Origin: Macrostomum hystrix
Lineage: Eukaryota > Animalia > Platyhelminthes
Direction of reading: 5' to 3'
Length of the DNA stretch: 64,000 bases
Assembly (NCBI GenBank): GCA_950097015.1
Contig: CATNEN010000024.1
Location: 3,906,001 to 3,970,000 of the forward strand
This document shows, one piece after another, positions 36,547 to 61,594 of the stretch. The first letter of the stretch is position 1. Each line of letters opens with the position of its first letter. Made by a program: the position numbers and the translations under genes. The notes under the pieces were generated by a model. That model was given only the letters and a program-made list of their open reading frames with translations, ran no database searches and had not been told where the DNA came from.

Positions 36547-39500
36547 ATGAGCCCCTCCGTGGATAGCTTGCCAAATCCTCCGGCGTTCCTCGACCCGCTG
36601 ACGCAGATTGATCTGAGTTATTACTATGCGGTGCCGAAATTCTTTAGTCAGGACCACCCGAACACTCGCTGGCTCATCACCATGATGCAAAACGGTGAGT
36701 TGGACCGGCTCAAGCGCAAGATGGAGACTTCCCCGGATTTGTTCAGAACAATGTACTATCAGATTTCGGACGATCCGCAGCTGCATAATCCAGAAGATTT
36801 CGCTTCTCCGCCAATGTTCAGGCGGAATGCGGTTTTGTATCTAACTGCATTGGGCATCGCCGTTTATATGGGAAAAGTGAGTTCGAACTAATATTGAATT
36901 TTCTTGCTAGAAGCAAGACTGCATATTAGCATACATACTGGCTTCTTATAGTTGGATAAAAAATATTCCATTGCAAACTTCCACTGCCTCAGGTCTGCAT
37001 AGTTGAGCTGCTGCTAAACTATAGGGACGTCTTCAATGAGCCATTGTGCAGCCATGAGCAAGTGCAGTACGCCTCTCACCTGCAGGACCCTGAGGTCGGC
37101 GATTTTCACGCGTTCCCTATCCACGTTATTATGATTCGCCGGGCCTGTTTCAGTTGCGCACAGGCCCTGTTGAAAGCCGGCTGGCTACCCGACAAACCAG
37201 TTGCCATGCCAATGCGGCGCAAGTTTGAACGAAGAGTAATTTATTTCCGAGATTGGCTGGACATAACACTGTCTGTGCTGGCGTCTCGACATATGTTTCC
37301 GATTCAAAACCTGCTCCGTGAGCTAACTAACTGCAAGGAATATACTCCGTTGAAGATGCAACTTGAGCAGTTCCTTTCTCTGAATCCGGCGACCGCCATC
37401 CCGATTGGCATCATCACTATTGAGGAGCTGCCGCAGGGAGTCAATATGCTTGGCGTCCGCTCACTGCTTGATTTGACTGAGCACTATGACCGCTATCTGC
37501 AGGTGCGTAATTGCGCTAGAGAAGTGGCTACGCTAAAACGCGAAGCCGTCGCTCTCGGCTTAAACCCGGAGGTGTTGATGATCCAGGCGCAGAACTTCGA
37601 CCCCGACGCCGCCGAAAAGGACCAGAATAATGGCAACGCTAGACGGGCACGCGGTGCTAACAATAGCAGCATTATAGGCAACGTGTCTGATGAGTCAAGC
37701 CCACAGATCGAGGACATCAATATGAATGCGAACAGCGGAACTAAGCGTAAAAGGAAAGTCGATCATCCGTACATCTCCGAAGGTTGCCGCATTTTGCACT
37801 TTGCGCTGATGCGCGATATTCACGGAAAATGTTTGCAGGTGAGTATTTGTTGGCTTCAAATGGCTGAGCTTAGCATTCACTCTTAACTCGGTTGCAAACA
37901 AAAGCAAAAGTTTAAAGGTATACCAACCAAATGCCTGGAATAGGTCAAACAGGCAACAGACTGGGATTGGGTGCAACAAACAACTGACTGGGATAGAGTT
38001 TATCAACAACATACTAGGGTTTATCCACCAACAGACTGGGTAGAGGGTGTTCTAACCAGGAAACTAAGAGAGGGGTGTAGGAAACTAGCGACTGACAGTT
38101 CCGGTACTGAAATTTGCAAACTGAAACTTCCCCGGCCAAAGGTGTGCATTGCAGCATTCGACGTGTTGTTGCAACGAAATTTCTATATGACTTCGAAAAA
38201 GTTGGAATCGGATAGCCCTGTCGCCAGAGATGCGCGCAACATGGTCTGTCTATTGCTCAACATGTTGCAGCGCGAGCAGGTGAGCCGATAACACTATTTA
38301 ATTATCGTAGATTTTATATTTTCTCCATAATCTGCACTAAGTTACAATATGATAAATAAGTTCCCTAAAACTGAACACGCCATCCGACAGAACAAAGTGG
38401 ACACTATTGTGTGCAAAATCAAGTCCGGTGTAAAGAAATTCCCTCACTTGGAGGAGCACAAGCAGCTTGAGAACCGCAAGTCTGCCTGCCTCCAGTTCAT
38501 GAACAAGCTGCTACGTTTGATAGCCACACTGCTGTTACAAACCAAGCTGCTTGTCCACTTTGTCCAGTCTAAATTTCCGCTTTACTCGGCTCAAGCCACA
38601 AACTTCCCGTTGAATCCTCTTCTGGCGCATAGGTTTGATGAGGTTAAAATTAGTATCATTCAAGAGTTTAATTTGCGTAAAGACGCGTGGATTTACCTTG
38701 ACAACGACATGATAGAGACTGTGGCCGGTATACCAAATATGCAGATGCACTTCAAGGTTGGTAAGAGGCCGCCGCAAAAGGTATCAAGAAAAGGTTTTAG
38801 GAAGAGTACTTCGAATAAGAGCAACATGACAAGCACTAACAGCTGTTCTGTGACCTACACTCGAGTTGAGCCAAAACGGAAGAAGATAAAGACAGTATCC
38901 TCTACAGCGTCATACTCTGCATCTGTATCGAACGTAATTAGTTCCGCAGCTCAACTTCTCGGCGAAAATGACACATACGAAAAATATAGAGGGACCGGTC
39001 TACCGGAACAGGGCAGCCCAGACATCAACACTGTCGAAGGCGCGGCTAGCCTGTCCGACGCACCCGACCTGTTCGATTTTGCGGCTGCCACCAAAAACTT
39101 CGCTGGTCTGCTGATGGCTGCCAACAGACCCGACTCTGTAGCCGCCCATCCAGAGTCGTCAGTGAAGCCGCAGATGTCGGAGAATGTTGCTTCAGATGGA
39201 AAGGTCACATCAAGCGCTCCGACTGGCATGGAGGTGCTGCTAGCCAGCCTGTGTCGCGAGGTCGACAACCTTTTTCGACCTTTGGAGAGCCCCGGTGGCG
39301 AGCTAGGTGGAGGCGGCGGCAACTGCGGCGGCAACGTCGGCGCCTGGACGGTGTCTCACGCTGACAACGCCGTCTGGTGCACGACGGCAGATCCAACTTC
39401 AAGTGTTCAAGCAGTGCACTCCAACATCGAGCCAGATCTGGCGTCAACACCGAAGCCAACACCGGAGCCAACTCCCGCTTTGATTCACTCGTCCTGTGTG

Positions 39501-39689
39501 GTCAACGCTACAGACGAAAACGCTCGTCAGGTTGACACTGTTTCTACAGCTTATCTGGCGCCCCAGCCGTCTGTGAGCTGTCGGCTTCAACAGCTCCAGC
39601 ACCGACGGAAGCCTAGCTGCGTCAGTCGACTGTTTAAACGCTTTTCAGGCAGAGGCATCAACACTGGCGCCGAGGCGAGTTCCAACTAA
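36547..39689 (+). CDS. Orphan ~946-aa protein with degenerate ankyrin-like repeats and NLS-like motifs; exons 36547-36876, 36993-37838, 37944-38279, 38361-39689
   Basis: Four long ORFs joined by short phase-0 GT-AG introns (116, 105, 81 nt); splicing creates the ankyrin-like LTALGIAVYMGK|VCIVELLLNY; second repeat FPIHVIMIRRACFSCAQALLKAG; TKRKRK and PKRKKIK; last acceptor and start codon less certain. Confidence 0.7.
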
Positions 39690-41352
39690 AGTCGACTGCG
39701 ATGCACACAGCAAGGCGCAGTCTTATACCGAAAACTGCTAAATGCTCGCTTCGATTTTTTTTCTTGTCTTAGTAGACGTTTTGGATTAATCGCCAATATT
39801 CCAAATGGCATTTGGTTTTTGCACTCCTGTTCTGTATGGTGCGTATGTTCTCTCGATGACTTCGTGTGTGTACCCTTTTTTTCAAGCATTTCAATCGCTT
39901 CTGCGATGGCGATGGTCGTGCATTCTGCGCTCTTCATTATTCTGAGCAACTTATTGACAACTGACGACACTATGCGAATGGTAACTTCGTGCTCAACAGA
40001 ATTTTAACGGAATCCTGGATAGAGGAAATGAGCACGTGGTGTTGCTCTCCTCGCCAGGAAAACTGCGCACTGTGAGAGCTTGTGCCATTGTTGCCTTTTT
40101 ATCGCCTCATTATGCAACATTCTTAACTGTTTTCTTTGTTTGAACCAGAGAGAGAATAAACAATATTTTTTAACGGATGTCTTAAAATTTGCTTAATCAA
40201 TTAAGTTTGACTTAGTTTTCCGTGTTTGTTATAGTTCTTTCTCCAGTTTTCTCGTACGTCAACTTTTATGTACTCGATACGCTCGTAGTGGGCTGGGTGT
40301 AATTAAAGTGCGGGTTCGTCTACGAAAACGCTTGTAAAAACTGTTGTATATATAATACTCGTACTCAAGCATAGTGTAACTGAATGCACGTGTGAATGTA
40401 AGCTCGTATATATTAGGCCGTATGAATAATTTCTCAGTTTATTCATACAGGCCCGAGTGTTGTCAACTCATAACAACTCATAGGCTTGAGTTGGAGCAGT
40501 TGCTCATTTTATTCATATGGCCTATTGTGCAACTTAGGTTAGCGGTACATAGCTTGTTCAAAATGAAATGTATTCCACCCGCCAACAAAAATTTTCTATA
40601 TGAAGCACTAATAATTATCAGTATACTAACCTAATTAGCCTAATTAATCATCATACTTAATTCCTATTATGCTGATTAATTAACATATATCCAGATGCAG
40701 CGGGGAGGCGTCGCCGCCCATTACGCTAGACCCTGGCGAACACGGGCAACTAAAGCTGCTGTGCCGTGCAGGGGTCAAATAAACTCTGGCAATTAATTAA
40801 GCTATTGTTTAACGACTAAAGAGTCATTACGATCAATGGAAGTCGATCGGTAGCCATAAAAAGGTCTTTTTACATACATATTAGTTGAATCACTGTAGAG
40901 TGCAGCAAGCTTCGGGTAGACATTTCACCAAGCTTCGCTTTATCACATCAACTTGTCTAGCCTCGCCTCAACCCATACTTGTATTGAACACGCAACCGAC
41001 TCAACGCTTCTTTACAATAGCTCAATCACACAGGAGTGATTGTAAGTGCGTTTGCGCGAAGCCAAAAGGTAGCGGAATCGATGAATATATATATATATTT
41101 CTAGATTATTTCTTTATTTTAATTTAATTCAGTTGATTTGTTCAATCAAATCTTATATACTAAAAATTAAATGGTTGCTTGCTTGCTTGTAATTGATTTT
41201 CTCCCGAACGGCCCAACCGATTTTCACCATTTAACTTCATTCTAAAATTACTTACACCTGCTCAATTTCCTTTGAGCTTTGCTTTGAGGTTTGATTGAAG
41301 ACGCAAATTGCCAGGGTTACAATAGCTTTGTATTTATTCAAGTGCATTCAAA

Positions 41353-42416
41353 ACTAGATTGAAGGTGTGCCACCTTAGCAGGTCGAAGTGCATTATATGC
41401 TCAATATTTCGAAATTATTTTTTACTTCAGATCATGTCACCCAATAAAATGAACAAAAAACCGTTGTAAATATTCCAAAACTTAGCGGCCTTTGTACTGA
41501 GGATACTCACTGAAGCACTTTAATAGAGCAGACTACTGCATCATTGACTCCTGTATCAAAATCTTGATGAGCGCTAATATCTCCTTGACTGACTGACAGC
41601 CGAATGTGGGACCCCCATATGGAGGGAGAGGGTGAATTTTTGTTTTTATTAGGGAACAAAATAAACAAAATTAAAACAGCGGGAGGGAGCGCGGAGAATC
41701 GGAGAGTGAGAGAGACAGTATGAGATCTATCTACCTGTCTATCTATGCCCATCTGTCAAAAAACGTAAAACATAATTAAAGGAAAGATTTATCCAAACAG
41801 CACTTGTTTTGTACATGCAACAACACGAATGGGCAGACACACACATTAGCAGTGCCATCAAGCCACGTTACCATATATATTATGTTGTGTTACTTCAGTA
41901 CGTAGGGTATAATTAATGGGACTGATAACATATCTGTTATTTCCTAAGCAAGGTATCTTTAAAATGCATATAATAAATCTACTAATTTTACGTTGCGAGA
42001 ATGTACTAATGTACCAGCGATTATTGACACTTTCATATAGTACAAAATTAGGATTGATGATGACAGACTGAAATGCGTTGCACTTTAAAAAGTACTCGCC
42101 CACTTCAAAGTACGCACTTTAAATGAATACCAGAGTACTCTATTGCTACGCCCTTAAAGAGTACCAGAGTACGAGTACTTAAGAGTGCTCAAAGAGTACA
42201 CTGTGAAAACACTGCCTTAAACAGAAACTGGGTTCGAGGAACGAAGACAAGTACTTTACTTTTAATTAACAAAAAATATATAAAAGCAGCGAGATGCAGC
42301 CCGGATTAGCAATGTGTTGTATGTTGTAGCCTTCCTTTAGGCTAGTTCGGGACGCTCACACTCTACCTCGCTCGTCGGTAGTCTCAGGAAGGTGGCGGCC
42401 TTAACAGGATCAGCCC
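41353..42416 (+). repeat. Left arm of a 1,064-bp inverted repeat pair
   Basis: Reverse complement of 51130-52193; the ORF track gives identical peptides (41507-41752 = 51794-52039; 41858-42103 = 51443-51688); spot checks were identical. Confidence 0.96.
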
Positions 42417-43149
42417 AGAGGTTTTCTAACGTGATCTCCGTAGGCCTGGCATTGCATCTGAAGAGGTGTGAAGTGGTGTAAAATTTTACTAATTTTACTG
42501 ACTAGGCCCCAATGCTATATTGGCCATGCTACTATCCACCTGTACACCTACTACTATTAACTTTGTCAATAACAAAACTGCTAATTTGCCTTTGCTTATC
42601 TTGTTGCTTAGGCATCTCATCCAATGATATCAAATAGGCCTAGGCCTACTGATAGTGGCACAACTAGGACACTACATTTTCTAGGCACCATATTATAATG
42701 TCATATTACACTGCTATAGCTGTTTAAAAAGGAACAAACAAAGATAGTTAGGCTTAAATATCATATTGTCTATATTATTATTATAAAAACAAAGCATAGG
42801 CCCTATAGAAATATAATGCTTCTAATTTTAACATTATAATCATTTATAGTTTTAAATCTAAAATGGATTGTTTAAATTTTTTTTCTTCATTTGTGTATTA
42901 TTTATTTTTCATTTTGTTATTAAAACAGCTGTGTTATAATTGTTGTTAATGTGATTCCAAATCACAACAACAAAAAGTGCAATTTAAACAGGCAAATATA
43001 CTTTCTTAATGCTAAACACTAGTTTGGTAAATGTTAGGAGTAGGCTTTTCAAAATATTTAGCTGCATACTTCAATTGTTTTTATTGTCTAATTAGCACTT
43101 AGACTAGCCCTAATAAATCAATTTCTACAAATATTTATATATTTACAAG

Positions 43150-43825
43150 CGGAGAGCCTCTCCACATCGCCAAATGGGAAGTGTCACACCTATCTGACCT
43201 GATGTCTTGTTACTGTAGCGACAAACAACAGCAGTTCTATTTGTTGTTTTTTGATTCAAACCTAGTGGTGACAGATTTGGCTGGCTCAGTGCTCCACACT
43301 GTGTGCTTACTCCAATTTGAGCACCCTTTGCGAGTAACGGGCTGTGCCAGCAAAATATTCGTTCTCGGTAGCAACTCAAAACTTTTGTGCCTGTCTTCGG
43401 AGATACTGGAAGTTCAAGAGCGCTCTCAGATTCCAGTAGAAAATGTTGTCGACATCGCAGTGGTCGGTCGCCGACTGGTCGTGATGAACAAAGAGTCCGT
43501 GTATTTGATGGGACTTACTTGCAACAATCTGAATCTGCTCTGGTCTCCTGATCAACCGAGTCAAGAGCCGAAGACAAACTTAGTACGACTGGTTGGTCTC
43601 GGCTTTGGATGTTTTCTCACTTACAGCGATGCAAAAGAATGGCTGATGTCAGTGTCTACCGATGTTCTAGCTACGCGTACTACGCTACCATTTCCTAGCT
43701 TTGCTTATCTCCAGCAGAACTTGCTGTGCGGTCATTCGATGGCGATTCCGAAACTGTCGATTGTTCGAATATTTCTCGAATCGAATGCTATTTATATGCG
43801 TGTTGCTAACCGTCGTGTAATATGA
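43150..43825 (+). CDS. Orphan terminal exon or ORF, beta-strand-rich (possible beta-propeller fragment); upstream exons not found
   Basis: Open frame of ~225 codons in AT-rich surroundings, preceded by acceptor-like TTTACAAG (43149); repeated hydrophobic strand motifs (KIFVLGSN, DIAVVGRRLVVMN). Confidence 0.45.
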
Positions 43826-44486
43826 CGAACCGGCGTAGACGACCGGCGAGGACTAACTACCAGGTTTGTTTAATTAACGGTCAGGAGTCAGGACAGATAT
43901 TTCTTCTACTGGAGTAAGTACTAATAATTAGTAGCACTTATTATGGCTTTCTTAGAAAACTTGGCTAGGAATTTTATCATTCTGATTTCCAATTTAATAT
44001 ATATTTTTACCATTTTCTTCTCTTATTGTTTATAACTTTTAGCAACATGTGTGTCACAAGCAAGGTAATTGTCGTATCGTATACTACGTTATTTTATAGT
44101 ATGCTATGATTCCCCTATGAAACGTACTTTGTGCTTTTTTCTTCGAAGTTTAAAATTACTAAAATATACTTCGTGGTACACGTGTGTAAATCGTGTTTTC
44201 TTAGATATAATTTTGTCTGGTGAACCTCGCAATTACACTTTTATACTTATACTAGCTTTTTTGCCTGTTGTTTTTGGGGCAGAAAGTTAAAGCAAAGCAG
44301 TAAGCAATTCACGTCTCTGTATTAACTTTATAGTGAAGGTCACCATTTATTTATTTACTGCATTAATGAAAAGTGAAGAGTTTGTTTAAGGGCGTTTAAG
44401 TAAAAAATAAGTGAAAAGTTTGTCCAAACAGCCCCCTCTTGATTACTTCTTTAGAAACATGTCTCTTAGCCACTCCTCTATACAGT

Positions 44487-44690
44487 CAGTGGCAGATCCA
44501 GGAATTTTGTTTTGGGGCGGTCTGTCAGGGGAGCGCCATGAGAATCACAGAGGGGGTGCCAGCGGCCGAAAAAGGGCGCCAGGAGCCAAGAAAGGGCGCC
44601 AGCGGCTGAAAAACGGGAGCCAGCGGCTGAAAAAGGGGCGCCAGCGGCCGAAAAGGGGCGCCAGTGCTGCGACTGGCGCCCCTGGTGGGG
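44487..44690. repeat. GC-rich MITE-like fragment with ~21-bp internal repeats
   Basis: Starts CAGTGGCAGATCCAGG; GGCGCCAGCGGC(C/T)GAAAAAGG repeated ~4-5 times. Confidence 0.5.
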
Positions 44691-44699
44691 GCATCTTAT

Positions 44700-45416
44700 T
44701 CCCATGATTAAAATTTTGGGCATCATTTCTAGGACACAGAATTGCCCTCTCTGACAGCCAGTCAACGCCAGCCTCTCTCTTTCTTATCCCAGGCTGGCTG
44801 GAGAGAAATATCGACCGGAGAGCCCTGCGCACTGGGATGCCACCGCACTCACCGCACTCAGTCTCAGTGCTGCTTGGGGGCCAGTAGACAGTCTAGGGGT
44901 TTGGGCTGTGTACATTCACGGCTTGAAATACAATGTACAGTCTGGGGCTTTGGCGCCCGGGGAAGGGAGGGGGTGGCTGTAATAAAATTTGGCCCGCAGA
45001 GTGGCGGAGGGGAGTTGGGGTGGCTGTCCTCGGAAAACAAAAAGTGACTCACTTTGAGATGATGCAGCTTTGCTTTGGATTGAGTAGAGATGTTCAAAAT
45101 TGACAGCATTGTTGGAAAACATGTAAAGTGTAAGTGGATCAAATTTTGAGAAAATCTGACAAAGTGGGGCGACGATATGTCGAATTGAGTGATTTTTTGG
45201 CGATTTTTGAGCAGTTTTTTGCACTTTTGAGCAGGAAGGAAATGACTTTTTGGGAATTTGAGTAGCCTATTGCACTCAGCGTAGGTGGTTTTAGGTATGT
45301 GCAAAGTTTGGTGCGATTTAGTTGAGCGGTTTTGGCGTCTATAAAGACAAAAGGTTGCACACACACACACACACACACAGACAGACAGACAGAGTTTTCA
45401 CTTTTATATATATAGA
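44700..45416 (-). mobile_element. Non-autonomous Helitron remnant
   Basis: Minus-strand 5' terminus A|TCTATATATATAAAAG followed by (CTGT)n(GT)n microsatellite; degenerate PIF1-type helicase motif WLSERAILCPRND..NFN at 44706-44760; 3' CTRR end not defined. Confidence 0.6.
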
Positions 45417-45489
45417 TAAAGTATACAGCATTTTCCTTAGCTAGCTTCTTTGCTCTAATCCTTATATATTGATTTTCAGCTGTTTATTC

Positions 45490-46116
45490 ATGTCGACTCC
45501 CAGCCCCACTGCTCAAGACAGCCTGCTTCGGGCTGTACTTCTCAGCACTAAGAATGGTGTCCGACTATGCGAGCTGCAGGCCCAGTACAGGGCCCTGGCC
45601 AGGCACGCCCTCGATCTGGCTGGACATGACAATGTGACTTCACTAATGCGCAGCTTGCCTAATGTAGGCTACATCCACCTAGTGAATGGCGAGTTAGTCG
45701 CATTTGGTCGAGAAACAGAGGAGACAAGCCACATCTGCTCGCTTATCCAGCGACAGAGAACAGGCGGCGCCAACCAAGGCGCTAGTCGAGGTGGTGGCGC
45801 TTTTCGATCGCAGAGCTTTGGCCAGCGCGCACTGCAGCAAGAGAAGCTTCATAGTCGCTATAAACCGCACCACACTACTATTCAGTCTTCTCGGAGCCAA
45901 GATGAGAACGCCAACTATTATCAGTCTGATTATAAGCAGCAGTGGCAGCGGGTCTGTCTGTCTGTTATCAGAGTCAATGAGGAAAGCGACAAGGAGTTGC
46001 CCTGTCAGTTGGTGCACCTCGGCGAGGCCAACACTGGCGGCCTGTGTGTCACCATCAGTAACGATAGGCACATTGTGGACTGGTCTAGCCATGGCCGCTG
46101 GCCAGTCAGGGTCTAA
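45490..46116 (+). CDS. Stand-alone extended LOTUS (OST-HTH) domain protein, 208 aa, TDRD5/TDRD7 (Tejas/Tapas)-like N-terminus
   Basis: LLRAVLLSTKNGVRLCELQAQYRALA..DNVTSLMRSLPNV..ETEETSHICSLIQRQR parallels the TDRD7 eLOTUS pattern (LRAVLQSHKNG..LQGEYRSL..ETARIAQLVARQR), including the C-terminal extension helix; acceptor TTTTCAG at 45473-45479, ATG at 45490; no Tudor domain seen. Confidence 0.8.
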   Translation: MSTPSPTAQDSLLRAVLLSTKNGVRLCELQAQYRALARHALDLAGHDNVTSLMRSLPNVGYIHLVNGELVAFGRETEETSHICSLIQRQRTGGANQGASRGGGAFRSQSFGQRALQQEKLHSRYKPHHTTIQSSRSQDENANYYQSDYKQQWQRVCLSVIRVNEESDKELPCQLVHLGEANTGGLCVTISNDRHIVDWSSHGRWPVRV

Positions 46117-48973
46117 TTGAACTGCTTGGAAACTAGTTGTGTAGGACCTAGCGCACTATTAATGTTGGTTGCTACTGTGTGTCATTTTACAAAAAATTAA
46201 GGTGCCCCTTGCTTGGTATCGCTTCCCCAGCTAAAATCAATTAGATCTTTTGTCCTTTGTGCTGGCCAATGTCGTTTTTATGATTCATTTTATGTTTTTA
46301 GCTTCCCCCTGTATTTTTAGTTTTTTAGTCTTCTTAGTTCAATTTGATATGGCTGCATCAATTGATTTTAATCAAACCTTGTGCCTGATCGATAGAACAT
46401 TTGCTCAATTTTCAGCTTTTAATTTGCCAATATTGTTATTAAATAACGAAATCAACAGTTTTTATTTGAATGTCAATCTGTGTTCAGGGTTAATTAGCAT
46501 CTCAGAAGTGACAAAGTTTGTGCCTATGCTTTGGTTATTGCTTCCAAGTGTCAACAATAAGATTTTATTTCATGACTTACTCCTGCCAATATGCTTATTT
46601 CTTCGAAATGATGGCAATGTGTAGAAATGTATCTTTGCATTTCATCCTTGCCTTGGAACTTTCCACTACGAGAATTTCTTTTTGTCATCGAAACTAAAAG
46701 AATAATACTTTGCTGTGGTGGAGAGTCAACACGCGACCAGCCAGCGCCAGTGCAGCCGCACCCAAAACCCCTCAACCTCAGTCTAGTTGAGGTGGGGGTT
46801 GGTGCACCCAGCCAGCCGGCTTGCTAAGCCAGGGTATGAAGTCACACCACCAGTTCGCACCTCCCTAGACCCCTCTATCTCGCTCTCGCGTTGTATATAA
46901 ATATACGTGCAATGCAGCACACAAACTTTGCTGCCACTCCAACTTGTAAACAAAAAGGCCTTCCGCCTTATTGCAGTTGTAAATTGGACGAATCTTTATT
47001 TTTTTAAGTTTTTTTGTGTACTTTTAAATTTCATATTAGTCATTCTTTGTGGACAGCATGCCTTGTGCGGATTAAAAATAGTGCTTGTTTTTCCTTGTCG
47101 ATTTATTTTCGTATTTTATATTCGTTATTTTGACAATAACTTTGTGTTGTATTTTGTATCGATTGACTCCAAGAAGCAAATATATATGTTGACAAGTCTC
47201 TAAAATCACTCAATTCTAACTCAAGTAGATACCTGTTGTTCGATCAAAATAAAAGTGAGCCACATGAATTAACATCATATACTAAGGTCCAATAAATAAT
47301 ACTCATAATAGAAAATCTTGGACATTCTATATATTTGGATTAGGAATTCTAAAGATGAAAATCTGAACAATACAATTTATGCTATTGGTAGAAAAATACC
47401 AAGTAATAAAAATATTTAAAATTAGATAAAAAACTAAATCTTGTTTATTAGTTCTTCTACAAATGGGCTAAGTAGAATAGCTAGCAATGGTAATAAATTT
47501 ACAAAGTTGAAAGTAAACATGCTACCTTAATAAATTGAAATTTTCTGTAAAAATAGTCTTATAATTAACAACATAATTAAGTTTTAAAAACTTTTTTACA
47601 CTCGGATTCTGTTCACTGTGTCTTTATATTAAAATGAGATTTTCCACTTAATTAAGCATTTTAAATGTATATTTTAACACCCACAGGTACGTGAAACAAC
47701 AAGATATGCCTTTGCAGTGAAATTCTTTGCCATTCAATACAAGTTACCCAACATTAGGTAGGCCTAGGCTAATTATTTAGCTAAGTCCATAATTAGACAT
47801 AGTATCTTTAAAAATGCAAAACAAATCAAATCAATCAATAAATATCCAAATCAATGTTGAGAGAAAAGTACTGCCATGCCTAAAACAAAAAGCATTGAGC
47901 ATTTAACTAATCTCACAACAGTTATTGCCTAAAGGCAGTTAATTGCCAAACAGTCAAATGGTTTGTTTTGTAAGTGCTTTGCTTATAATAATTCTGCAGC
48001 CATTGCAGCCCAAATTGCACTATAAATCGCCAAAAGGCAATTAATTGCAAAAATGCAAATGGTGCATTTCAAGAGCTTTGGTTTGGTAAAAATTCAGCAA
48101 CTAACAATCTAAAAACTGCATTATTGCATTAAACTGCTAAGAATCTCGTTTAATACATAAACACTTCTGCTTAATTATCTACGCAGTATAAAAGTAAAGA
48201 ATGTTTGAATAATAAAATATTATTCAAATACTATACATCAGTTAGTATTTAAAAGAAAACTATAAGCTTACACTTACAATGTAAAATAGGCCTATGTAAC
48301 AATTGAATTATTTACAAGTAAAACTTGTACTTGTAGAATACAATATATTGTAAAACAAGTATTTATAAGGTAGTAGGATACTTATATATAGAGTAAAAAG
48401 CGAATATAATAGCTACAGATTAAAGGCCTGAAAAAAATTCAGATTTAGATAGTGATTGCTTGGTTAAGTTGCTTTGAAATTTTTATGTCAAATTTGCCGT
48501 GCGACAAAAATTTCGAATGCTACTGTTAACATAGCCGATTTGAATTTTATTTTCTTGTAGAAACCATATAAAACAGAACGACTGAAATGTACAATTTGAT
48601 TTTTTAAAAATTATTTTAATTCAGTTTTTTAAGCAACTTATTTCTTTCTTCAATTAAATTTTGTTATACAATTTATAAAATGCTTATTTTCAAAATATCC
48701 ACTCAAAAAGTAAGTTCAAGAGCTTTAAAAATGCGCACATTTTTTCACTTCACGGCTCCAAAAAGTCACCATAGAAGCTTTTTGCAGGACGCAAGAATTT
48801 TTACGTTACAAAATAGCACTTTTATGTGCATTTTTTATTCAGTTTCAAAAGGCTTTTTAGTTACCTATTTGGTATTTTCTTCTTTTAAAGATTTTTGCGA
48901 AATCAGGTCTTTTTAACTTATTACGAAACTGTGGACCCACACTTTTACGCAACGCAATGCGCATGATGTCATC

Positions 48974-50029
48974 TTAAAGCACTTGCTAAATGCTATTTAT
49001 TGACACCACACTGAAGGCCTGGCGTAGCATCGTTAATAAATGGCAGCGTGAAATATAGCAAAAAAACGCATAGTACCGGAACCTCGTAATTCGGTAAAAT
49101 GTTAATAGCGTCAAAATACGAATTTTCGCACACTAACGAAGATGGCAGTCATCTGTACGTGTTTACTGGGCACAATAGTGCTCTTGGAAGCTAAGAACCT
49201 CATAGCGAAAATTAATATATTTTCCGCCCTATGTAGTGCTCAAATGGGTTGTTTTTGCACAAAATCACGTTTTTCGATTTTGAGAGTAAATTAAAAATTT
49301 TTTTTGCAACTGACAGACGTGAATGTCACTTTTTCTTAGAGTAGTCATCTAGATGTTTCTAATAAGTACTAATATGGGTCATTCTTATGCTTCACCTATC
49401 CTTACTATAGGTACAAAGTCATTATTTCATTTCCAGCAAGTCACGTGACCTGGCCTGAGGTGTACAACGCATCGTGCAATGCCAGCGAACATACACTCAA
49501 ATTAAAGCACTTTTTAAATGCTAACTATTGACACCACACTGAAGGCCTGGCGTAGCATCGTTAATAAATGGCAGCGTGAAATATAGCAAAAAAAACGCAT
49601 AACACCGGAACCTCGTAATTCGGTAAATGTTATTAGCGTAAAAATACGAATTTTCGCACACTAACGAAGATAGCAGTCATCTGTACGTGTTTACTGGGCA
49701 CAATAGTGCTCTTGGAAGCTAAGAACCTCATAGCGAAAATCAATAAATTTTTCACCCTATGTGTGCTCATATGGGTTGTTTTTGCACAAAATCACGTTTT
49801 TCGATTTTAAAAGTCAATTATAACAAAATTTTGCAACTGACAGACGTGAATATCATTTTTTCTGACAGTAGTCATCTAGGTGTTTCTAATAAGTACAAAT
49901 TTTGGCTCATTCTTACGCTTCACCTATCCTTAGTATAGGTACAAAGTCATTATTTCATTTCCAGCAAGTCACGTGACCTGTCCTGAGGTGTACAACGCAT
50001 CGTGCAATGACAGCGAACATACATTCAAA
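48974..50029. repeat. Two tandem 528-bp diverged direct repeats
   Basis: Units begin TTAAAGCAC at 48974 and 49502; next TTAAAGTAC at 50030; shared GACACCACACTGAAGGCCTGGCGTAGCATCG and further blocks. Confidence 0.92.
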
Positions 50030-50588
50030 TTAAAGTACATCTAAAATTTAGTTCAATGACACCAAGTGCGTCGCGCTCCGGTAATCCGTTCAAAAGTTAC
50101 AGGCTAAAAAGTATGTTCGATATGCAAGCCCCCCGTACCGTCGTTAAAGTACATTTCTGTACCGGCAGCGACTTCAATAAACTAAGACGAAATTTCAAGA
50201 TATACATATTGTGCGAAATTTAGTTGTGCACCTTGTCTAAAAAGTCTGATTTTCCTAGCATGTCGTCGTTGCTTATTTTTTGTACATTTGTATCATGAAA
50301 AATGCATAAAAATAGCCTAAATCACGTTTATCGACTTTAGCAGTGTATGGCTCAGAGTCAGTGGAACGAAACGGCTCAAAATGTATTATAAACATGTAGA
50401 TCTTACCTAAATGACCACATTCATGTACTTTTTAGAGCCTCGCAACAAGGTTGAATTTCCTTTATTTCGGTTCGAATACCTACCCGTCGAATATTCGAAT
50501 GTAATTAACAGGTGCGAATGTACAGTTAAAGTGAGTATCTTGGTTAAAGTCGTGCGTCATGTAAGAGTCCCAGGTGCCATCGTTAGAA

Positions 50589-50636
50589 TGACGCAGCTCA
50601 AAGGTCGCGCTGACGCGCGACCTTTGAGCTGCGTCA
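50589..50636. repeat. Perfect 22-bp-arm hairpin with a 4-nt loop
   Basis: TGACGCAGCTCAAAGGTCGCGC / TGAC / GCGCGACCTTTGAGCTGCGTCA. Confidence 0.95.
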
Positions 50637-51056
50637 GTTGAAAGTTAAAAAAAATGTGCATTTTTTGACACTTAAAAAAAGACACTTTTACAGAATTACC
50701 TATCAAGGTAAGCATTTAGCGGAAAATAACCAATCAGTGTCTTGAAGGTCTAAAAATTCGCCAAAAGTTGGGTTCAATCAATTTTTGACTCCATATTGTG
50801 AATCCTTATTTTTTAAGATTCAAGATTTCGATGGGTCCAAAAAAATTCACTTTTTTGTTGCCATGGCAACCAAGACGCGTTGCTATGGAACTTTCACGTC
50901 ACTCATCTTGTAGCCCTAAATGTTTTACGTCCATAGAGGGGTCACACATGGTTTCATCTCAAGTGGTTTTAATTCTGCATCAATTTTAGTTTCTAAAACG
51001 TTGATTTTACGTTGGGGGAGTCTCCGGGACATCTTATCTCGGTCTCGTTTGTCCGA

Positions 51057-51117
51057 AAAAATTGCCAACGAGGAGCTACGCTCGCTTCGCTCGCTTCGCT
51101 CCTCGTTGGCAATTTTT
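51057..51117. repeat. Perfect 20-bp-arm hairpin with a (GCTCGCTTC)2 loop, 12 bp from the right inverted repeat arm
   Basis: AAAAATTGCCAACGAGGAGC (51057-51076) / GCTCCTCGTTGGCAATTTTT (51098-51117). Confidence 0.93.
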
Positions 51118-51129
51118 CCGGATTTTTCC

Positions 51130-52193
51130 GGGCTGATCCTGTTAAGGCCGCCACCTTCCTGAGACTACCGACGAGCGAGGTAGAGTGTGAGCGTCCCGAA
51201 CTAGCCTAAAGGAAGGCTACAACATACAACACATTGCTAATCCGGGCTGCATCTCGCTGCTTTTATATATTTTTTGTTAATTAAAAGTAAAGTACTTGTC
51301 TTCGTTCCTCGAACCCAGTTTCTGTTTAAGGCAGTGTTTTCACAGTGTACTCTTTGAGCACTCTTAAGTACTCGTACTCTGGTACTCTTTAAGGGCGTAG
51401 CAATAGAGTACTCTGGTATTCATTTAAAGTGCGTACTTTGAAGTGGGCGAGTACTTTTTAAAGTGCAACGCATTTCAGTCTGTCATCATCAATCCTAATT
51501 TTGTACTATATGAAAGTGTCAATAATCGCTGGTACATTAGTACATTCTCGCAACGTAAAATTAGTAGATTTATTATATGCATTTTAAAGATACCTTGCTT
51601 AGGAAATAACAGATATGTTATCAGTCCCATTAATTATACCCTACGTACTGAAGTAACACAACATAATATATATGGTAACGTGGCTTGATGGCACTGCTAA
51701 TGTGTGTGTCTGCCCATTCGTGTTGTTGCATGTACAAAACAAGTGCTGTTTGGATAAATCTTTCCTTTAATTATGTTTTACGTTTTTTGACAGATGGGCA
51801 TAGATAGACAGGTAGATAGATCTCATACTGTCTCTCTCACTCTCCGATTCTCCGCGCTCCCTCCCGCTGTTTTAATTTTGTTTATTTTGTTCCCTAATAA
51901 AAACAAAAATTCACCCTCTCCCTCCATATGGGGGTCCCACATTCGGCTGTCAGTCAGTCAAGGAGATATTAGCGCTCATCAAGATTTTGATACAGGAGTC
52001 AATGATGCAGTAGTCTGCTCTATTAAAGTGCTTCAGTGAGTATCCTCAGTACAAAGGCCGCTAAGTTTTGGAATATTTACAACGGTTTTTTGTTCATTTT
52101 ATTGGGTGACATGATCTGAAGTAAAAAATAATTTCGAAATATTGAGCATATAATGCACTTCGACCTGCTAAGGTGGCACACCTTCAATCTAGT
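51130..52193 (-). repeat. Right arm of the 1,064-bp inverted repeat pair
   Basis: Reverse complement of 41353-42416; identity ends at GGGCTGATCC (inner) and ATCTAGT (outer). Confidence 0.96.
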
Positions 52194-52706
52194 CTTAGTT
52201 GATTGTCTATGAATCACAGACAGAAACTTATTATATGACGAAGTGTCTTAATTTTTATCGTTCTAAAAACAATTAATTAAAATCTTGTATTGATCTGTAA
52301 GACGCTAATCACGCGAAGTGGCATTGATGGTTTTTGTCTCTGTTGACATTTAGTAAGCCTATTTGTCTCCAAACTTATGTATCATGGATGATTTTATATA
52401 TATATATATACTACAATAAATAGCAGCAAGCTTATCTTAAGCTTGCTAGTCAGCAATAGGTAGAAAATGTGAGTTTTTTCTCTATAGCAGTATTATTCAT
52501 CCCTTGACTGAAGTTAATGTTAATTTCTTTATTAAATACACACTTCAAATTTAAGCTAGTTAGTGGACCTAAATGTGAAATCGCTATGTTGTATATCAAG
52601 GGGCTAATTTCGAACTATAAATAAGTCTTATCTTGGTATTATACATAGCTATAGTCATATAGATATGGTATATTGGCATAATGGTAGTTTCTTTTTTTAA
52701 TTATTA

Positions 52707-53461
52707 TGTCGTAGGGCTCCTTACTTAAATCTTACAGCTGCCACTAAGTTGTCGTAGGCTCTCTCCTCTTTGGGTTTAAATATCACCGATACTCTTTTAT
52801 TAAATATTAACAATTGCTTATTTCACACCTTGAATTAACCTTTGAAATAACTCTTAATTTCCTTTGTCTATGACTTAGTTATTCTTCATAGGCTAGCTAT
52901 GTATCCTCTTATTACATATGCATATATTGCTTAACTTGGCCAGATAGGCTGCTTTCCTTCCAAAATTTGGTAGCGTTCTCACGAGTGTCCGAGCGGCAAG
53001 ACACTTCTTCCTCTCCTTACTTACTCACAACTGTCTGGCTCTCTGGTTTGTTCCCAGTCTTTCAAGGCTTCCAATGGACTGAAGTTGCCCAACTTTGCAC
53101 ACAGTGCTATTCACCAATCAGGATTTTACCCTCTGCTCTTTTGTTTTACACTCTACTACGGCTTTTTATAACTATCTCCTTCTTTATTCTTTCGAATATT
53201 CACCGACTTGTGTATTATCACAGACCTGCTTTTCTCCTTCTCTCTAAAATAATTGAATTCAAACACTTTGAGTTTTATTCTCCTTTGTTTTCTCAGAACT
53301 GGGCACGGGGCACCGGTTGGGGATTTTGGGCAAAACTGCATCTATATTTATAGCAAAATTGGGGTGGATGATACGGTGTATTATAACAAAATGAAAATCG
53401 GGAAAAAGCATTTGGCGGGAATTCAACTTATAATTCTACAATAAAATTTGGGCCTGCCTCA
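52707..53461 (-). repeat. 3' LTR
   Basis: Direct repeat of 60840-61594 (offset 8,133); minus-strand TATAAATA near 53345-53352 and AATAAA near 53275-53280. Confidence 0.97.
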
Positions 53462-53640
53462 ACTGGCTTCCCCTATATAAATTTTGGAATAAGAAATACA
53501 ACGCGTGACAAAATTTATAGTAATAATAGCATACATAAAAACGGGTAGCAAAATAGCATACACACAAAGTAAAACGGGTAGCAAAAATAGCACAATAAAA
53601 CGGGTGACAAATGTTATAGTAACACGGTTAGATTGTCCTT

Positions 53641-54855
53641 TTAAGAAAAGTAGCACTCCTCGGTCAGTCTTTCGTTGCGGGGCCATCCCACTGTGCTGGC
53701 CATCCACCTCAACTCAATGTTGAGAGGAATGCGATTTACTGGCAGTGGGCTGCGATTGATAACCTTCCGCGCATACTGCACAGCTCTCTTCCAGGCAGTT
53801 ATACAGTGCGCCCTTGAGAACTTCTCGCATAACACTCGCATGACGGAGTAAATTGCAGCTCGCTGTGGGTACCGCCGGTCGTTGTTGAATAGTCCAGCGT
53901 CCAGAATGTAGCCTTTCATGTGCCGAATCAGCCGTTTGAAATGCTCGTGCTGAGCATGTGGGATCTCCGCCATTGTTCGGGCGAATTCTTGGTTCTCCAC
54001 GGATTCCATGCTGGCATCGTCCTCGTCATCCATCGGTTGTGGCGACTGCTGCGACGGCTGCGGCTGTGGCTGCTGGTACAGAGGCTGCTGCTGTGGCGGC
54101 TGTTGCTGCGATGGCTGGGGCTGTTGCGACGGCTGCGACTGTGGCTGCTGGTACAAAGGCTGCTGTGGCTGCTGTTGCTGCGATGGCTGGGGCTGTTGCT
54201 GCTGCTGCGACGGCTGCGACTGTGGCTGCTGGTACAAAGGCTGCTGTGGCTGCTGTTGTTGAAAGTCAGTTCGATATCGGTACTGAATCGGTACCCTTTG
54301 CGCCTTTGGAGCTATTGGACGACCTTTAGGCTGTGGCTGCGGCTGAGGAACCGGCTTTGGGGCTATTGGCCGCTGTCCGGCCATACGTCGGCCCGGCTCC
54401 TGGCTCGGCGCAGCAATGACTTTGGTGGATCTAGCTCCTTCCATTCGTCCATCCTGAGCAGCTTCCGCTTCTGCCACCGGCGCAATCGCCTGCTGCCGGA
54501 GTAGATTAACTCTCGTGGTAGCATCGAGGAACACTGGCAGTCTTGAACTGGGCAGCTTTCTCTTACTGGCGACTCCTTCCTGTACCGATGTGGCAGCTCG
54601 CTTCTGGCTGTTTGCCCTCGACTGCTGGCCAACCATAGACGGTTGCGTCCTCTGCCGCAATGGCGCCTCGAGTTCTTCCGACTCATCGATAATTGCTTGA
54701 ACAATATCTACTTCGCCATCTCCGGCTTCCTTATTCTTAGTCTGCTCTGCTCTGTCAGGTTCGACATTCTCGCTGTCCGAAAAATCCACGGTAACAGCTT
54801 CTAATAGCTTCTCGAATTCACTTACGCTCATGGCGGCTTCTTTATCTTGTTCCAT
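53641..54855 (-). CDS. Gypsy accessory ORF3, ~404 aa from the first ATG (54855): acidic N-terminus, Q/P-rich repeats, helical C-terminal domain; not env-like
   Basis: Uninterrupted ORF between pol and the 3' LTR, same strand as gag-pol; QQQPQQPLYQQPQSQPS repeats; no signal peptide or transmembrane segment visible. Confidence 0.8.
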   Translation of the reverse strand: MEQDKEAAMSVSEFEKLLEAVTVDFSDSENVEPDRAEQTKNKEAGDGEVDIVQAIIDESEELEAPLRQRTQPSMVGQQSRANSQKRAATSVQEGVASKRKLPSSRLPVFLDATTRVNLLRQQAIAPVAEAEAAQDGRMEGARSTKVIAAPSQEPGRRMAGQRPIAPKPVPQPQPQPKGRPIAPKAQRVPIQYRYRTDFQQQQPQQPLYQQPQSQPSQQQQQPQPSQQQQPQQPLYQQPQSQPSQQPQPSQQQPPQQQPLYQQPQPQPSQQSPQPMDDEDDASMESVENQEFARTMAEIPHAQHEHFKRLIRHMKGYILDAGLFNNDRRYPQRAAIYSVMRVLCEKFSRAHCITAWKRAVQYARKVINRSPLPVNRIPLNIELRWMASTVGWPRNERLTEECYFS

Positions 54856-54930
54856 TGCGGACTTGCTTTCTTTGTCAGTATGACTTCTCTCTCTCTCTCT
54901 GTATGTTTGTTTGCCTTCCCAGGGCACTGG

Positions 54931-55011
54931 TTCATATAGGCGTGAGGCTGACGCGCATCATTGTGTCTCAGATTTCATTGGGCTATACTGGCTTATTCTT
55001 AATCCTATTGG
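54931..55011 (-). promoter_or_regulatory. Candidate internal promoter for ORF3
   Basis: On the minus strand: CCAAT (55007-55011), CCAAT (54977-54981), near-palindrome TGATGCGCGTCA (54949-54960), TATATGAA (54931-54938), ~75 nt upstream of the ATG; motif match only. Confidence 0.35.
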
Positions 55012-55130
55012 ATCCCTACTTGATTTCAATTAACCCCTACCTAATTGACTGGAAGTGGCTAACCCCTACTCCCTTTCTATCCCTTGCACGTGGTTTCCTT
55101 GTGTTACTATTGCGTCACCCCAATCTCTGC

Positions 55131-58100
55131 CTAGATCTGTAAATTCCCAAGTATACTGAACACGGTGGCAAGCCTCTGCAAATAGCCTTCAAACCTCGCG
55201 GGGGGTCTGATTTGTCTGCGCGGACGGCTTGTCACTCCTTCCCTTTCTTCATTCTGTGCAATGTACATGCCTCCTTCTGAGGTGGCTGTCGCCAGACCCT
55301 CAGCTGTCCCTTCGCTTTCGCTCTCCTCTTCACTGCTCGTAGCCTCAGGCTCGGTGTGTGATTCATCCTCAACTTCTATCTCAGCTCCTAACTCCAAATC
55401 TTCTCCATTAATTTCACTTGGATTCCTCCTAAAGTGACATTGCCATTCTAATCTGTCTTCTTCCTCTTCGGATTCATCTTCCTCTGTTAGAACAAATCTT
55501 CCCTTCTCCTTCGGCTGGCTTCCCCTAACTTTGACCTCTGTCTTCTTAGCTTTCTTCTCTGGTGCGGCCTGGCTTCCCCTAATTAATTCCTCTTGGGTTG
55601 AATTAGGCACAATAGTTATGTTGTCTCTATGGACAATCATGATATTGCCTACTAACTGTCCTTGCTCCTCTTTTTGCACTCGAAATACTACCTCTGATAT
55701 TTGCTCTATTACTCTGAAGGCTGATCTCTTTTTCCTATGAAATTTGTGAGATTCCTCACTGTCCAACTGTGGATTATTGATCAATACTAGACTTCCAACT
55801 GGGACTGTCTTAGGCAATTTGCTGTTTTTCGCAGACTCTTGTCTGTTACTGACAACCTTCTCCAATTTTCTTTTGACAATGTCTCTCGCAATCTTCAGCC
55901 GTTCGGCATGTTCTGTCACATAAGATGGATAACTGGCGAATGACTTTGGTTGGCTGATTTGACTGTCCATAGGCAATACTGCTTCCCGTCCAAATAACAG
56001 GTAGTGGGGAGTAAAGCCTGTGGTTTTGTTTACACTAGTGCGGACAGCAACTAATGCAGCTGGGATCATAAGGTCCCAATCACTGTGATCTTTCTCAATG
56101 AGACAGGTTACTATTGATTTAATTTGCTTGTTAAATCTCTCCACCAATCCATTGCTTTGGGCATGGTAGGGTGTTGTAAACGTATGCTTCACGTTATACA
56201 TTTCGCAAAAAGCTTTGAACTGCTTGCTAGCGAATGCCTTGCCATTGTCTGTGTGTAACCACTGACATTGCCCATACTCTGCGAAGATTCTTTCCTGTAA
56301 GATTTTGATCACAGTATCTGACTTTTGATTTCTAGTAGGGAATGCGAACGGATATCGAGTGGTGCTATCCACAATAGTTAGGACATACTTGTGCCCTCTT
56401 TTGCTCTCTTTGGATAGTGGGCCTATAAAATCGACATGCAGGCGATGGAAAGGTTCACTGATAGGGAACGATTGCACTGGCGCCTGAATCGGGTTTCCTC
56501 TCTTGCTTTCCAGGCACGGAATACACTCTGCGATATGAGCTTCCACTGCTTTGACCAATCCTGGTCTCCAAAATCTCTGCCTGACACGTTGAATTGTTTT
56601 ATCGCGTCCCAAATGTCCTGCTAGTGGGCTATCATGCAGATCGCTGAGAACTAGCTTATCCAAGGACTGGGGCAGTACAACTTTCCAACTGTCATCTTCG
56701 CTAATGATTAGCATCTCATTCTCTACCTTCATATCCTCAAAGAATTTCCTCATCTTCTTCAATTCTGGGCTGACAATTTCAGGTAACTGGGGATTGTTCT
56801 CTCCTGATTTCTTCCATTCAATTAGCACTTTAATTACTGGGTCATCTCTTTGTGACGCAATAATTTGCTCTCGTTTCAATGGGCTGGGTAAGAAATCGGT
56901 CAATAACTTCTCGCACTTGCTACTTGTTGCTTGCAGCATATTCTCACTCTCACTAGGATTAAATTCTTCAGGAACTGGACTCGGAAGCGGAATGCTGGAG
57001 TCATGTTCAAGTTCACTGGGAATTCTCACCTCTCCTTGTCCTGAGATAGTAGACTGGATCCTGCTATTGGGATCTAACGTCTTTTTCTCTCCTTCACTTA
57101 GGGCAGTCTGGGGCTGTGTCAAGCTATATAAGCTATCATTAGCCTTGACTTCCTGTCCTGACTCTTCCATTACACTGCAGCTTTGCACTATCGGCTCAAT
57201 AACTTGCTCTGCTTCAGGGACATCAGCTGGTCTTCTTGACAGACTGTCAGCGTTCTGGTTCTTTGCACCGCTTCTGTGTTCTATATCAAACGAGAATTCG
57301 TTTAGGCGCTCGACCCACCGACCAAGAATTCCTTGAGCTTCTGTTTGCCTTAACAGCCAAATTATCGCCTTATGATCTGTTCTTGCCAAAAACTTCTTGC
57401 CTAACAGGTAGAAACGGAAATGCCTCATGGCATCCACTAGGGCTAAGAGTTCTTTTCTAGTGATAGGGTAGCGTTTTTCCGACTCTTTCATAGCTCGGCT
57501 GAAATAAGCTATAGGTCTCTCTATGCCATCTGATTGGATCTGGCTAAGTACAGCGCCAATACGGCTATCACTTGCATCGGTATCCAATACCATCTTCACC
57601 TTCTCGTCATCCACAAATTCGGGATACGCTAAGACTTCAGTGGACATCATCCGGTTCTTTAGCGACTCAAACGCTTCGTCATGCTCTTTGCTCCATCTCT
57701 CTTGAAAGTTCTTAATTCCTTTCCTTGTTAGCTGGAAAAGGGGATGGGCAGCTTCTGCATAATTTTTAATGAAGCGGCTATAGTAATTACATAGGCCAAG
57801 GAAACTGCGTAGCTCCTTCACATCTTTTGGCTTCGGCCAGGTCTTGATTGCTTCAATCTTCGTCTCATCCGTACGGATACCTTCTGTACTGATCACATGT
57901 CCTAAGTACTTTAACTCTCTATGAAAAAGGTTACATTTCTTTGGCCTTAGCTTCAATCCTGCGATTATTAATCTCTTGAACACTTCCTTTAGATGGGAAA
58001 GGTGGTCATTAAAGTTCTTCGAATAGGTAACTATATCGTCTATATACGACATAGCAAATTGATGTTGAATCCCTAAAAGTACAAGATTCATGAGCCTTTG

Positions 58101-60769: not shown

Positions 60770-60824
60770 ACCTTTATCTAACTTTCAAACTGACTGTGTG
60801 CTTTAGCTGGATTCCAATCCTTTA

Positions 60825-60836
60825 CCGCTGACACCA
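60825..60836 (-). promoter_or_regulatory. Primer-binding site, probably tRNA-Leu
   Basis: TGGTGTCAGCGG 3 nt after the 5' LTR; TGGTGTCAG is complementary to the 3' end (CUGACACCA) of eukaryotic tRNA-Leu CAG/CAA. Confidence 0.8.
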
Positions 60837-60839
60837 AGT

Positions 60840-61594
60840 TGTCGTAGGGCTCCTTACTTAAATCTTACAGCTGCCACTAAGTTGTCGTAGGCTCTCTCCT
60901 CTTTGGGTTTAAATATCACCGATACTCTTTTATTAAATATTAACAATTGCTTATTTCACACCTTGAATTAACCTTTGAAATAACTCTTAATTTCCTTTGT
61001 CTATGACTTAGTTATTCTTCATAGGCTAGCTATGTATCCTCTTATTACATATGCATATATTGCTTAACTTGGCCAGATAGGCTGCTTTCCTTCCAAAATT
61101 TGGTAGCGTTCTCACGAGTGTCCGAGCGGCAAGACACTTCTTCCTCTCCTTACTTACTCACAACTGTCTGGCTCTCTGGTTTGTTCCCAGTCTTTCAAGG
61201 CTTCCAATGGACTGAAGTTGCCCAACTTTGCACACAGTGCTATTCACCAATCAGGATTTTACCCTCTGCTCTTTTGTTTTACACTCTACTACGGCTTTTT
61301 ATAACTATCTCCTTCTTTATTCTTTCGAATATTCACCGACTTGTGTATTATCACAGACCTGCTTTTCTCCTTCTCTCTAAAATAATTGAATTCAAACACT
61401 TTGAGTTTTATTCTCCTTTGTTTTCTCAGAACTGGGCACGGGGCACCGGTTGGGGATTTTGGGCAAAACTGCATCTATATTTATAGCAAAATTGGGGTGG
61501 ATGATACGGTGTATTATAACAAAATGAAAATCGGGAAAAAGCATTTGGCGGGAATTCAACTTATAATTCTACAATAAAATTTGGGCCTGCCTCA
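60840..61594 (-). repeat. 5' LTR
   Basis: Direct repeat of 52707-53461; followed on the minus strand by the PBS. Confidence 0.97.

Follow-up and report, generated by a model that had tools for sequence, protein, structure and literature searches.

A perfect 1-kb inverted repeat in the Macrostomum hystrix genome most likely marks a single rearranged copy of an ACTAG-specific, Helitron-like family

Introduction

When a stretch of cargo-bearing DNA is framed by long and perfectly matched inverted arms, is it a transposon in its own right or the trace of a rearrangement? The question is raised by positions 41353-52193 of a 64,000-nucleotide window from the flatworm Macrostomum hystrix (GenBank assembly GCA_950097015.1, contig CATNEN010000024.1, positions 3,906,001 to 3,970,000 of the forward strand). 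Window positions are used throughout, and places elsewhere in the 220-Mb genome carry a prefix such as C1. The original prediction regarded this 10.8-kb segment as a young, non-autonomous foldback or composite transposon with cargo. A young, non-autonomous and cargo-carrying mobile element is indeed present, with copies that are 97-99% identical, captured gene fragments and no transposase. The 10.8-kb segment, however, is not its unit. We estimate at roughly 0.6 the probability that 41353-51122 is a rearranged copy of a young non-autonomous family specific for ACTAG, whose inverted arm comes from a second insertion on the opposite strand followed by a deletion. The inverted repeat would then most likely be a one-off rearrangement scar and no part of the family's design.

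Results

The two arms, 41353-42416 on the plus strand and 51130-52193 on the minus strand, are exact reverse complements, as had been claimed: a script comparison found 1,064 of 1,064 positions to agree, with 0 differences. A repeat search returned them as the sole inverted pair in 39000-54500 (41350-42419 and 51127-52196, spacer 8,707 nt, the 3 extra bases per side being tolerated mismatch), and the origin of a perfect 1-kb inverted repeat by chance is far beyond expectation. The window is free of N, the locus lies in the middle of its contig, and the flanks on both sides are single-copy in the assembly. Both arms carry three private variants (positions 44, 45 and 77) that are absent from 17 other copies; the closest other copy differs from the window arms at 9 sites. 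Since the arms share these private variants, the right arm descends from the left copy, or else the two have one immediate source in common.

With the arm as query, the 220-Mb genome gave 17 more full-length matches (97-99% identity) as well as shorter and older relatives. All of them start at the same ACTAGATTGAAGG, their upstream flank is different in every copy, and every other full copy passes arm position 1064 unbroken into the sequence found from window 42417 onward. Conversely, 42417-42778 has 18 other full-length genomic matches, each abutting an arm. With this unbroken continuation in 18/18 other copies, the left arm is no separate unit but the first 1,064 bp of an element. The right arm repeats element positions 1-1064 in inverted orientation, together with the ACTAG (52189-52193, minus strand), and no other full arm in the genome stops at position 1064. 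The sharp boundaries reported for the arms are therefore real on the outside, where the arm ends are true element termini, but the inner end of the left arm bounds nothing and is simply the place where the truncated right-hand copy stops. These results rule out the arm as a free-standing 1-kb element or a solo long terminal repeat (LTR), because all other copies pass position 1064. An LTR retrotransposon with the arm as its LTR, suggested by same-strand pairs 7-10 kb apart, was ruled out as well: those pairs are head-to-tail tandems sharing ACTAG, or belong to a triplicated block of the element and 3.1 kb of gypsy sequence.

The interior is part of the same element. When 40001-53500 was compared by BLAST with the fetched copies, 41353-51122 was covered at an identity of at least 94%, except for 232 bp that fall in a stretch outside the copy sequences compared. 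By its matches in other copies, 41358-51122 (plus strand) is the body of one family copy, about 9.77 kb long, in which the last 20 nt of the canonical end are missing. It is matched at 98.5-99.3% over almost its full length by the copy at C1:21322716-21334386, the longest matches overall reach 96-99%, and the similarity of many copies ends at window 51122, not at 52193. A search for other copies with different flanks, proposed along with the original prediction, thus retrieves arm and interior, but never together with the right arm. The 10.8-kb arrangement bounded by inverted repeats is a single case in the 220-Mb genome, and about 30 other units consist of the 5' arm, cargo and a different 3' terminus. 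Nowhere else in the genome do two 5' ends face each other, nor does any copy begin at position 1065, as the reciprocal product of an inversion would; the window contains no other piece of the element.

The ends of the family are well defined. A total of 37 5' ends, all reading ACTAG|ATTGAAGG, and 33 3' ends were found in the genome, and none in shuffled controls. Upstream flanks are unrelated among 23 independent 5' junctions, every one of which reads ACTAG|ATTGAAGG. The family comprises about 35 copies, one of them in the window. Paired ends delimit elements of 1.7-12.7 kb, whose copies are 97-99% identical; four wider end pairs span 16-27 kb (C1:25886858-25910748, C30:4724279-4746815, C3:7212532-7239389 and C3:142718-159254). 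At the canonical 3' end, compared in 12 cases with unrelated downstream flanks, a hairpin is followed by CTGCACTTCGACCTAACTAG and then by the flank, the tail after the hairpin being 20 nt long and finishing in ACTAG. The canonical tips, ATTGAAGG... and ...CGACCTA, have no inverted-repeat relation. A 13-nt subterminal inverted repeat, AGGTCGAAGTGCA, lies 22 nt inside the 5' end (41380-41392, plus strand), and the 13 nt preceding AACTAG at the 3' end, TGCACTTCGACCT, are its exact complement.

Three tandem junctions in which successive copies have one ACTAG in common were identified (C1:24635384-88, C7:6541307-11 and C38:21009353-57). As a single strand, such a head-to-tail junction is predicted to fold into the 3' hairpin and a second stem made of the 13-mers, with ACTAG|ATTG in the loop (DNA fold of -47.5 kcal/mol, z -10). 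The family also includes 5' fragments without 3' ends, for example of positions 1-864 and 1-798. The 864-bp arm fragment (C1:17248034-17248893) ends in a short fold-back, consisting of CTGTGAAAACAC, a few bases and then GTGTTTTCACAG, which hints that truncated copies with inverted-repeat scars may be recurrent in the family.

Occupied and empty versions of the same site identify the target. Two family copies on C1 are embedded in a gypsy element, a paralogue of which occupies about 52707-61126 of the window. The first occupied site reads ...cattccca-ACTAG-[element ending ...CCTA-ACTAG]-aaatcaaaag, and its empty counterpart ...CATTCCCA-ACTAG-AAATCAAAAG in 11/15 gypsy copies. The second reads ...ttctaa-ACTAG-[element]-ACTAG-aacttatt when occupied and ...TTCTAA-ACTAG-AACTTATT in 13/16 gypsy copies when empty. 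ACTAG is thus single in the empty sites and stands at both borders of the insertions, and it follows from these comparisons that the family targets 5'-ACTAG-3', with the element always in the same orientation. A 5-bp duplication would leave the same sequence as the insertion, just 3' of an ACTAG, of an element with ACTAG at its own end, and what is observed is compatible with either. The base preceding the target is A in 15/23 cases, so that the element's own 3' end is identical to the preferred target, AACTAG; in only about half of the copies is the 3' end followed by T.

In the window, the left outer junction reads caaa-ACTAG-ATTGAAGG and the right one, on the minus strand, ctaag-ACTAG-ATTGAAGG (CAAT-CTAGT-cttag on the plus strand). 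The pentanucleotide at the element's 5' junction (41353-41357, plus strand) is target-derived, as judged from all 23 independent 5' junctions and the two paralogous empty sites. The suggested palindromic CTAG target duplication was therefore close to right in deriving the outer CTAGs from the target, while the target of the family is ACTAG.

The inner right junction is where the window copy departs from its relatives. The 3' subterminal hairpin (51052-51122, plus strand; arms of 30 nt at 51052-51081 and 51093-51122, 27/30 paired, 11-nt loop) is present, and the copy stops at its last base, 51122, without the canonical 20-nt tail; the element is thus broken at the hairpin base. There follows a 7-nt filler, TTTTTCC (51123-51129, plus strand), foreign both to the canonical 3' end and to the arm. 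Together with the adjoining GG, it repeats the 9-mer TTTTTCCGG located immediately upstream. After the filler come inverted positions 1064 to 1 with ACTAG, and then unique DNA. Repair by end-joining or template switching typically leaves such a truncation with a short templated filler, and assemblers do not invent junctions of this kind.

As for the cargo, the interior was said to hold an orphan exon, an eLOTUS open reading frame (ORF), a 528-bp tandem repeat, perfect hairpins and a Helitron remnant. The orphan exon corresponds to an open 214-aa ORF (43181-43825, plus strand) without a Pfam family, a captured gene fragment that is present in at least 8 family copies, most of them with stops. 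Its counterpart, with 92% amino acid identity, lies inside a 599-aa open frame at C3:5980187-5980819, which is probably the parent exon. The eLOTUS assignment holds in that the atlas neighbours of the captured 215-aa ORF (45469-46116, plus strand) are all OST-HTH (score 0.88), but its match to Pfam PF12872 is weak (E 7.7e-4) and below the curated cut-off, so that we call it LOTUS/OST-HTH-like. A parent-like locus exists at C37:4282486-4283011. This ORF is open in at least 5 family copies; among three gap-free copies, the ratio of nonsynonymous to synonymous polymorphism (pN/pS) is 0.5-0.85, near neutral and with no clear constraint, and the openness therefore probably results from youth and not from selection.

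The tandem repeat is confirmed as two copies of about 528 bp, 87-95% identical (48969-50047, plus strand), and the same structure in other copies makes it part of the family sequence. Of the hairpins, that at 50589-50636 is perfect with 22-nt arms, unlike the imperfectly paired one at 51052-51122. The Helitron remnant was not recovered, as 0/67 of the genome's matches to Helitron_like_N fall in the window. Consistent with the reported lack of a transposase or reverse transcriptase (RT) inside, no domain of the transposase, RT or Rep type was detected in interior ORFs of at least 70 aa; a recombinase domain is likewise missing from the ORFs inside the window copy, no genome-wide recombinase search having been made. 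Rfam gave no match in the window.

Several neighbouring features may be recorded here. The gypsy-type LTR retrotransposon at 52707-61126 begins 513 bp to the right of the right arm, with LTRs at about 52707-52993 and 60840-61126 that have more than 40 genome matches, often paired about 8.1 kb apart. Its two ACTAG-type sites, which correspond to the paralogous sites compared above, lie on the minus strand at 56332-56336 and about 59429-59433, where the window copy reads TACTAG and GCTAG. At C1:24651747-24678673, three copies of the ACTAG element recur with an exact spacing of 10,016 bp and the same 3.1-kb gypsy piece between them, equivalent to window 59428 down to 56337. This triplicate could have arisen by unequal crossing-over after one gypsy had received insertions at two of its ACTAG sites, or else by capture of the gypsy piece through bypass of the 3' end. 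In addition, the 12.7-kb C7 copy holds a nested intact gypsy pol of 1,480 aa (C7:6544677-6549119), with a gag ORF upstream and with protease, RT, RNase H and integrase domains. We therefore ruled out this ORF as an autonomous partner of the family. Just left of the window element, a repeat unit of about 90 bp (41148-41239) has hundreds of genome matches (658 first-look candidates), partly in tandem arrays, for example on C14 and C31. Finally, window 6001-8000 shows an extreme strand composition over 2 kb (GC skew +0.57, AT skew -0.50), and window 10001-12000 has a G+C content of 62%.

Discussion

How did a single copy of the family come to be flanked by an inverted version of its own head? The route that we consider most likely, and that we infer from the junctions described above, involves a second insertion and a deletion. 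The outer flanks are compatible with a single pre-insertion site, caaa-ACTAGT-cttag (that is, ...TTCAAA-ACTAGT-CTTAGTTG), and, ACTAGT being palindromic, the ACTAG target was available on both strands. A first copy would have inserted with an intact ...CCTAACTAG tail. Because three tandems share one ACTAG, the ACTAG at the 3' end of a resident copy can evidently be reused, and where the next base is T, the opposite strand of the junction would be just as suitable a target. A second copy, probably the daughter of the first, would then have inserted at the opposite-strand ACTAG of the first copy's 3' junction, in a tail-to-tail counterpart of the family's head-to-tail tandems. The product would be a palindrome with arms of about 9.8 kb and the centre ...CCTAACTAGTTAGG... 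Being unstable, long perfect palindromes are resolved by deletions of their centre. Here, deletion and end-joining would have run from the hairpin base of the first copy to position 1065 of the second, with the loss of about 8.7 kb of the second copy, and would have been sealed by the templated filler. A comparable origin has been proposed for composite Helitrons in Fusarium, which would arise from an adjacent insertion in opposite orientation and the subsequent loss of internal termini (PMC5148889).

Several points weigh against this reconstruction. It is inferred from one locus, whose structure is that of the assembled sequence. The intact tail-to-tail junction that it postulates is absent from the whole assembly, and a partner is found at the window junction only, although about half of the 3' junctions read ACTAGT. 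The two sides of the supposed deletion are also very unequal, 16-20 nt against about 8.7 kb. There is no empty allele of the window site in the assembly, since the flanks are single-copy. The Helitron-like label, for its part, takes in end structure and behaviour only, and the 5' end is not TC nor the target A|T. Moreover, none of the 67 matches to Helitron_like_N in the genome could be linked to a RepHel element with the family termini, and the proposed search for an autonomous partner with common termini yielded no candidate among the copies read. Only one of these 67 Rep-domain matches, at C3:7229521, is located between family termini (those of the 26.9-kb C3 pair), and it is probably nested, because the same Rep type also occurs without family termini.

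Part of the same evidence could be explained in one step. In such an aberrant transposition, both 5' ends would come from the same donor in a single event and the broken ends would be joined, either after two abortive strand transfers into both strands of the palindromic ACTAGT or after a linear intermediate, broken at the 3' hairpin, had undergone snap-back synthesis. The identity of the arms with their common private variants, the break at the hairpin base with its templated filler, the exact 5' termini beside unique DNA at both outer ends and the 5' fragments without 3' ends elsewhere in the family would all agree with it. We nevertheless hold it to be unlikely: we know of no precedent for such a product, and snap-back run-off by itself leaves the CTAG at the right junction unexplained, even if the sequence cannot separate the one-step from the two-step course. 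An inverted segmental duplication or an inversion unrelated to transposition, for instance by template switching or between direct copies, draws on the same junction, as replication-based rearrangements typically show a hairpin breakpoint and a templated filler. It appears highly improbable, given that the inverted copy reaches precisely to the 5' terminus of the element with its ACTAG and not into an inverted left flank, and that neither a reciprocal product nor a copy starting at position 1065 exists in the genome. Of its specific forms, an inversion between two direct copies was ruled out by the lack of a reciprocal junction in the window and of a position-1065 start in the genome. Nesting of the left copy within an older inverted copy was also ruled out, the left flank not being the continuation of the right arm.

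That the 10.8-kb unit is itself a foldback or composite transposon, moved as a whole into a CTAG site, was the starting idea, and the outer A-CTAG ... CTAG-T is compatible with a single ACTAGT target. Since CTAG is palindromic, the inverted 5' end also finishes in ...CTAG and could in principle substitute for the 3' cleavage site. The uniqueness of the unit, one in 220 Mb, largely refutes this idea, and we regard it as improbable: every other copy has a different 3' end and lacks the right arm, no copy has a terminus at the arm's inner edge, and truncation with filler at the inner right junction is typical of repair and unlike element design. The original prediction had itself named arms that occur elsewhere unpaired around this cargo, together with a missing empty site, as grounds for giving up the composite. 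This is in essence what is observed, the assembly containing no empty site of the composite with its single-copy flanks, except that the arm is never an independent element either. About as doubtful is an assembly artefact, in which the right arm or its junction would have been mis-joined from reads of different, 97-99% identical copies. A young multi-copy family makes mis-assembly conceivable, the arms are 100% identical while all other pairs differ, and the structure is that of the assembled sequence. On the other hand, the 7-nt filler and the truncation point are unique and found in no other copy, the three arm variants are absent from the 17 full-length copies compared and were thus not borrowed from them, and the locus sits mid-contig between unique flanks with no N.

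What kind of element is this family? In its ends, tandems and gene capture, it behaves like a non-autonomous Helitron-type rolling-circle element, as far as its sequence can tell. With the class definitions of PMC11417382 and PMC5148889, the resemblance to HLE1 Helitrons includes a 3' end in ...CTAG (in agreement with CTRR) after a stable hairpin, no terminal inverted repeats at the tips, asymmetric ends, a variable interior with host gene fragments and exact head-to-tail arrays. The Macrostomum genome is also rich in Helitrons, as its 67 Rep-domain matches indicate. In contrast to HLE1, however, the 5' end is ATTG instead of TC, the target is ACTAG, found on both sides after insertion, instead of A|T without duplication, and the hairpin is much larger and lies 20 nt from the end. 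Like Helitron2/Helentron (HLE2) elements and FoHeli of Fusarium, the family has a short inverted repeat (13 nt) between its end regions, a 3' stem-loop and structured joined ends. The 12-16-nt repeats of HLE2 are terminal, with the stem-loop after the right repeat, whereas here the left repeat lies 22 nt inside the end and the right one comes after the stem-loop; the HLE2 target, T|T or TNAT|T, also differs from ACTAG.

Other classes agree less well or in other respects. Foldback (FB-type) and composite elements resemble the window segment in their long, perfectly matched inverted arms around cargo and the lack of a transposase inside, but there the arms occur in every copy or are each a complete unit, whereas here they occur once in about 35 copies and the arm is the head of an element. 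The other paired copies have the 5' end and a different 3' end in place of foldback inverted repeats, and 18/18 other copies run past position 1064, where a composite arm would have its second terminus. For a cut-and-paste transposon with terminal inverted repeats, a 5-bp duplication of ACTAG would be compatible, but the tips are not inverted repeats. Bacterial-type HUH elements of the IS91 and IS200-IS605 kind are prokaryotic and carry their own transposase. They have in common with the family an insertion beside a short specific sequence resembling their own end, asymmetric hairpin-bearing ends, no inverted termini and tandem or one-ended products, but no transposase is linked to the family.

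Cryptons offer a different comparison. A short identical core, ACTAG, is common to the target and the joined ends, direct repeats form the borders, tandems share one core and terminal inverted repeats are lacking; a hairpin-plus-CTAG end, on the other hand, is not a Crypton feature, and no recombinase gene is present in the copies read. A Crypton-like, recombinase-type mechanism with ACTAG as the crossover core is possible. More broadly, there is some chance, though not a large one, that the family represents an undescribed site-specific kind, driven by rolling-circle replication or by a recombinase. Its target, (A)ACTAG, would copy its own 3' end and resident ends would serve as landing pads, landings on the same strand giving tandems and those on the opposite strand at ACTAGT giving palindromes that collapse. 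A variant that we find less likely is that the inverted 5' end now works as a substitute 3' end, creating a new mobile form bounded by inverted repeats. Our literature searches brought up no published account of a Helitron-like family that targets ACTAG, in Macrostomum or elsewhere.

To conclude, the main value of this analysis is a correction: a striking, perfect inverted repeat of 1 kb belongs to a single rearranged copy and not to a new foldback or composite transposon. The window locus also provides a testable idea, namely that palindromic target junctions could produce inverted pairs of Helitron-like elements that are subsequently reduced by deletions. If transcribed, the 1-kb inverted repeat with its 8.7-kb spacer could, more speculatively, form double-stranded RNA against the family. 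Beyond this copy, the repeat leads to an ACTAG-specific family whose target is its own 3' end, which combines Helitron and Helentron features in hybrid termini and has amplified gene fragments. The ACTAG family thereby offers a clear case for studying how Helitron-like elements choose their sites and build arrays.

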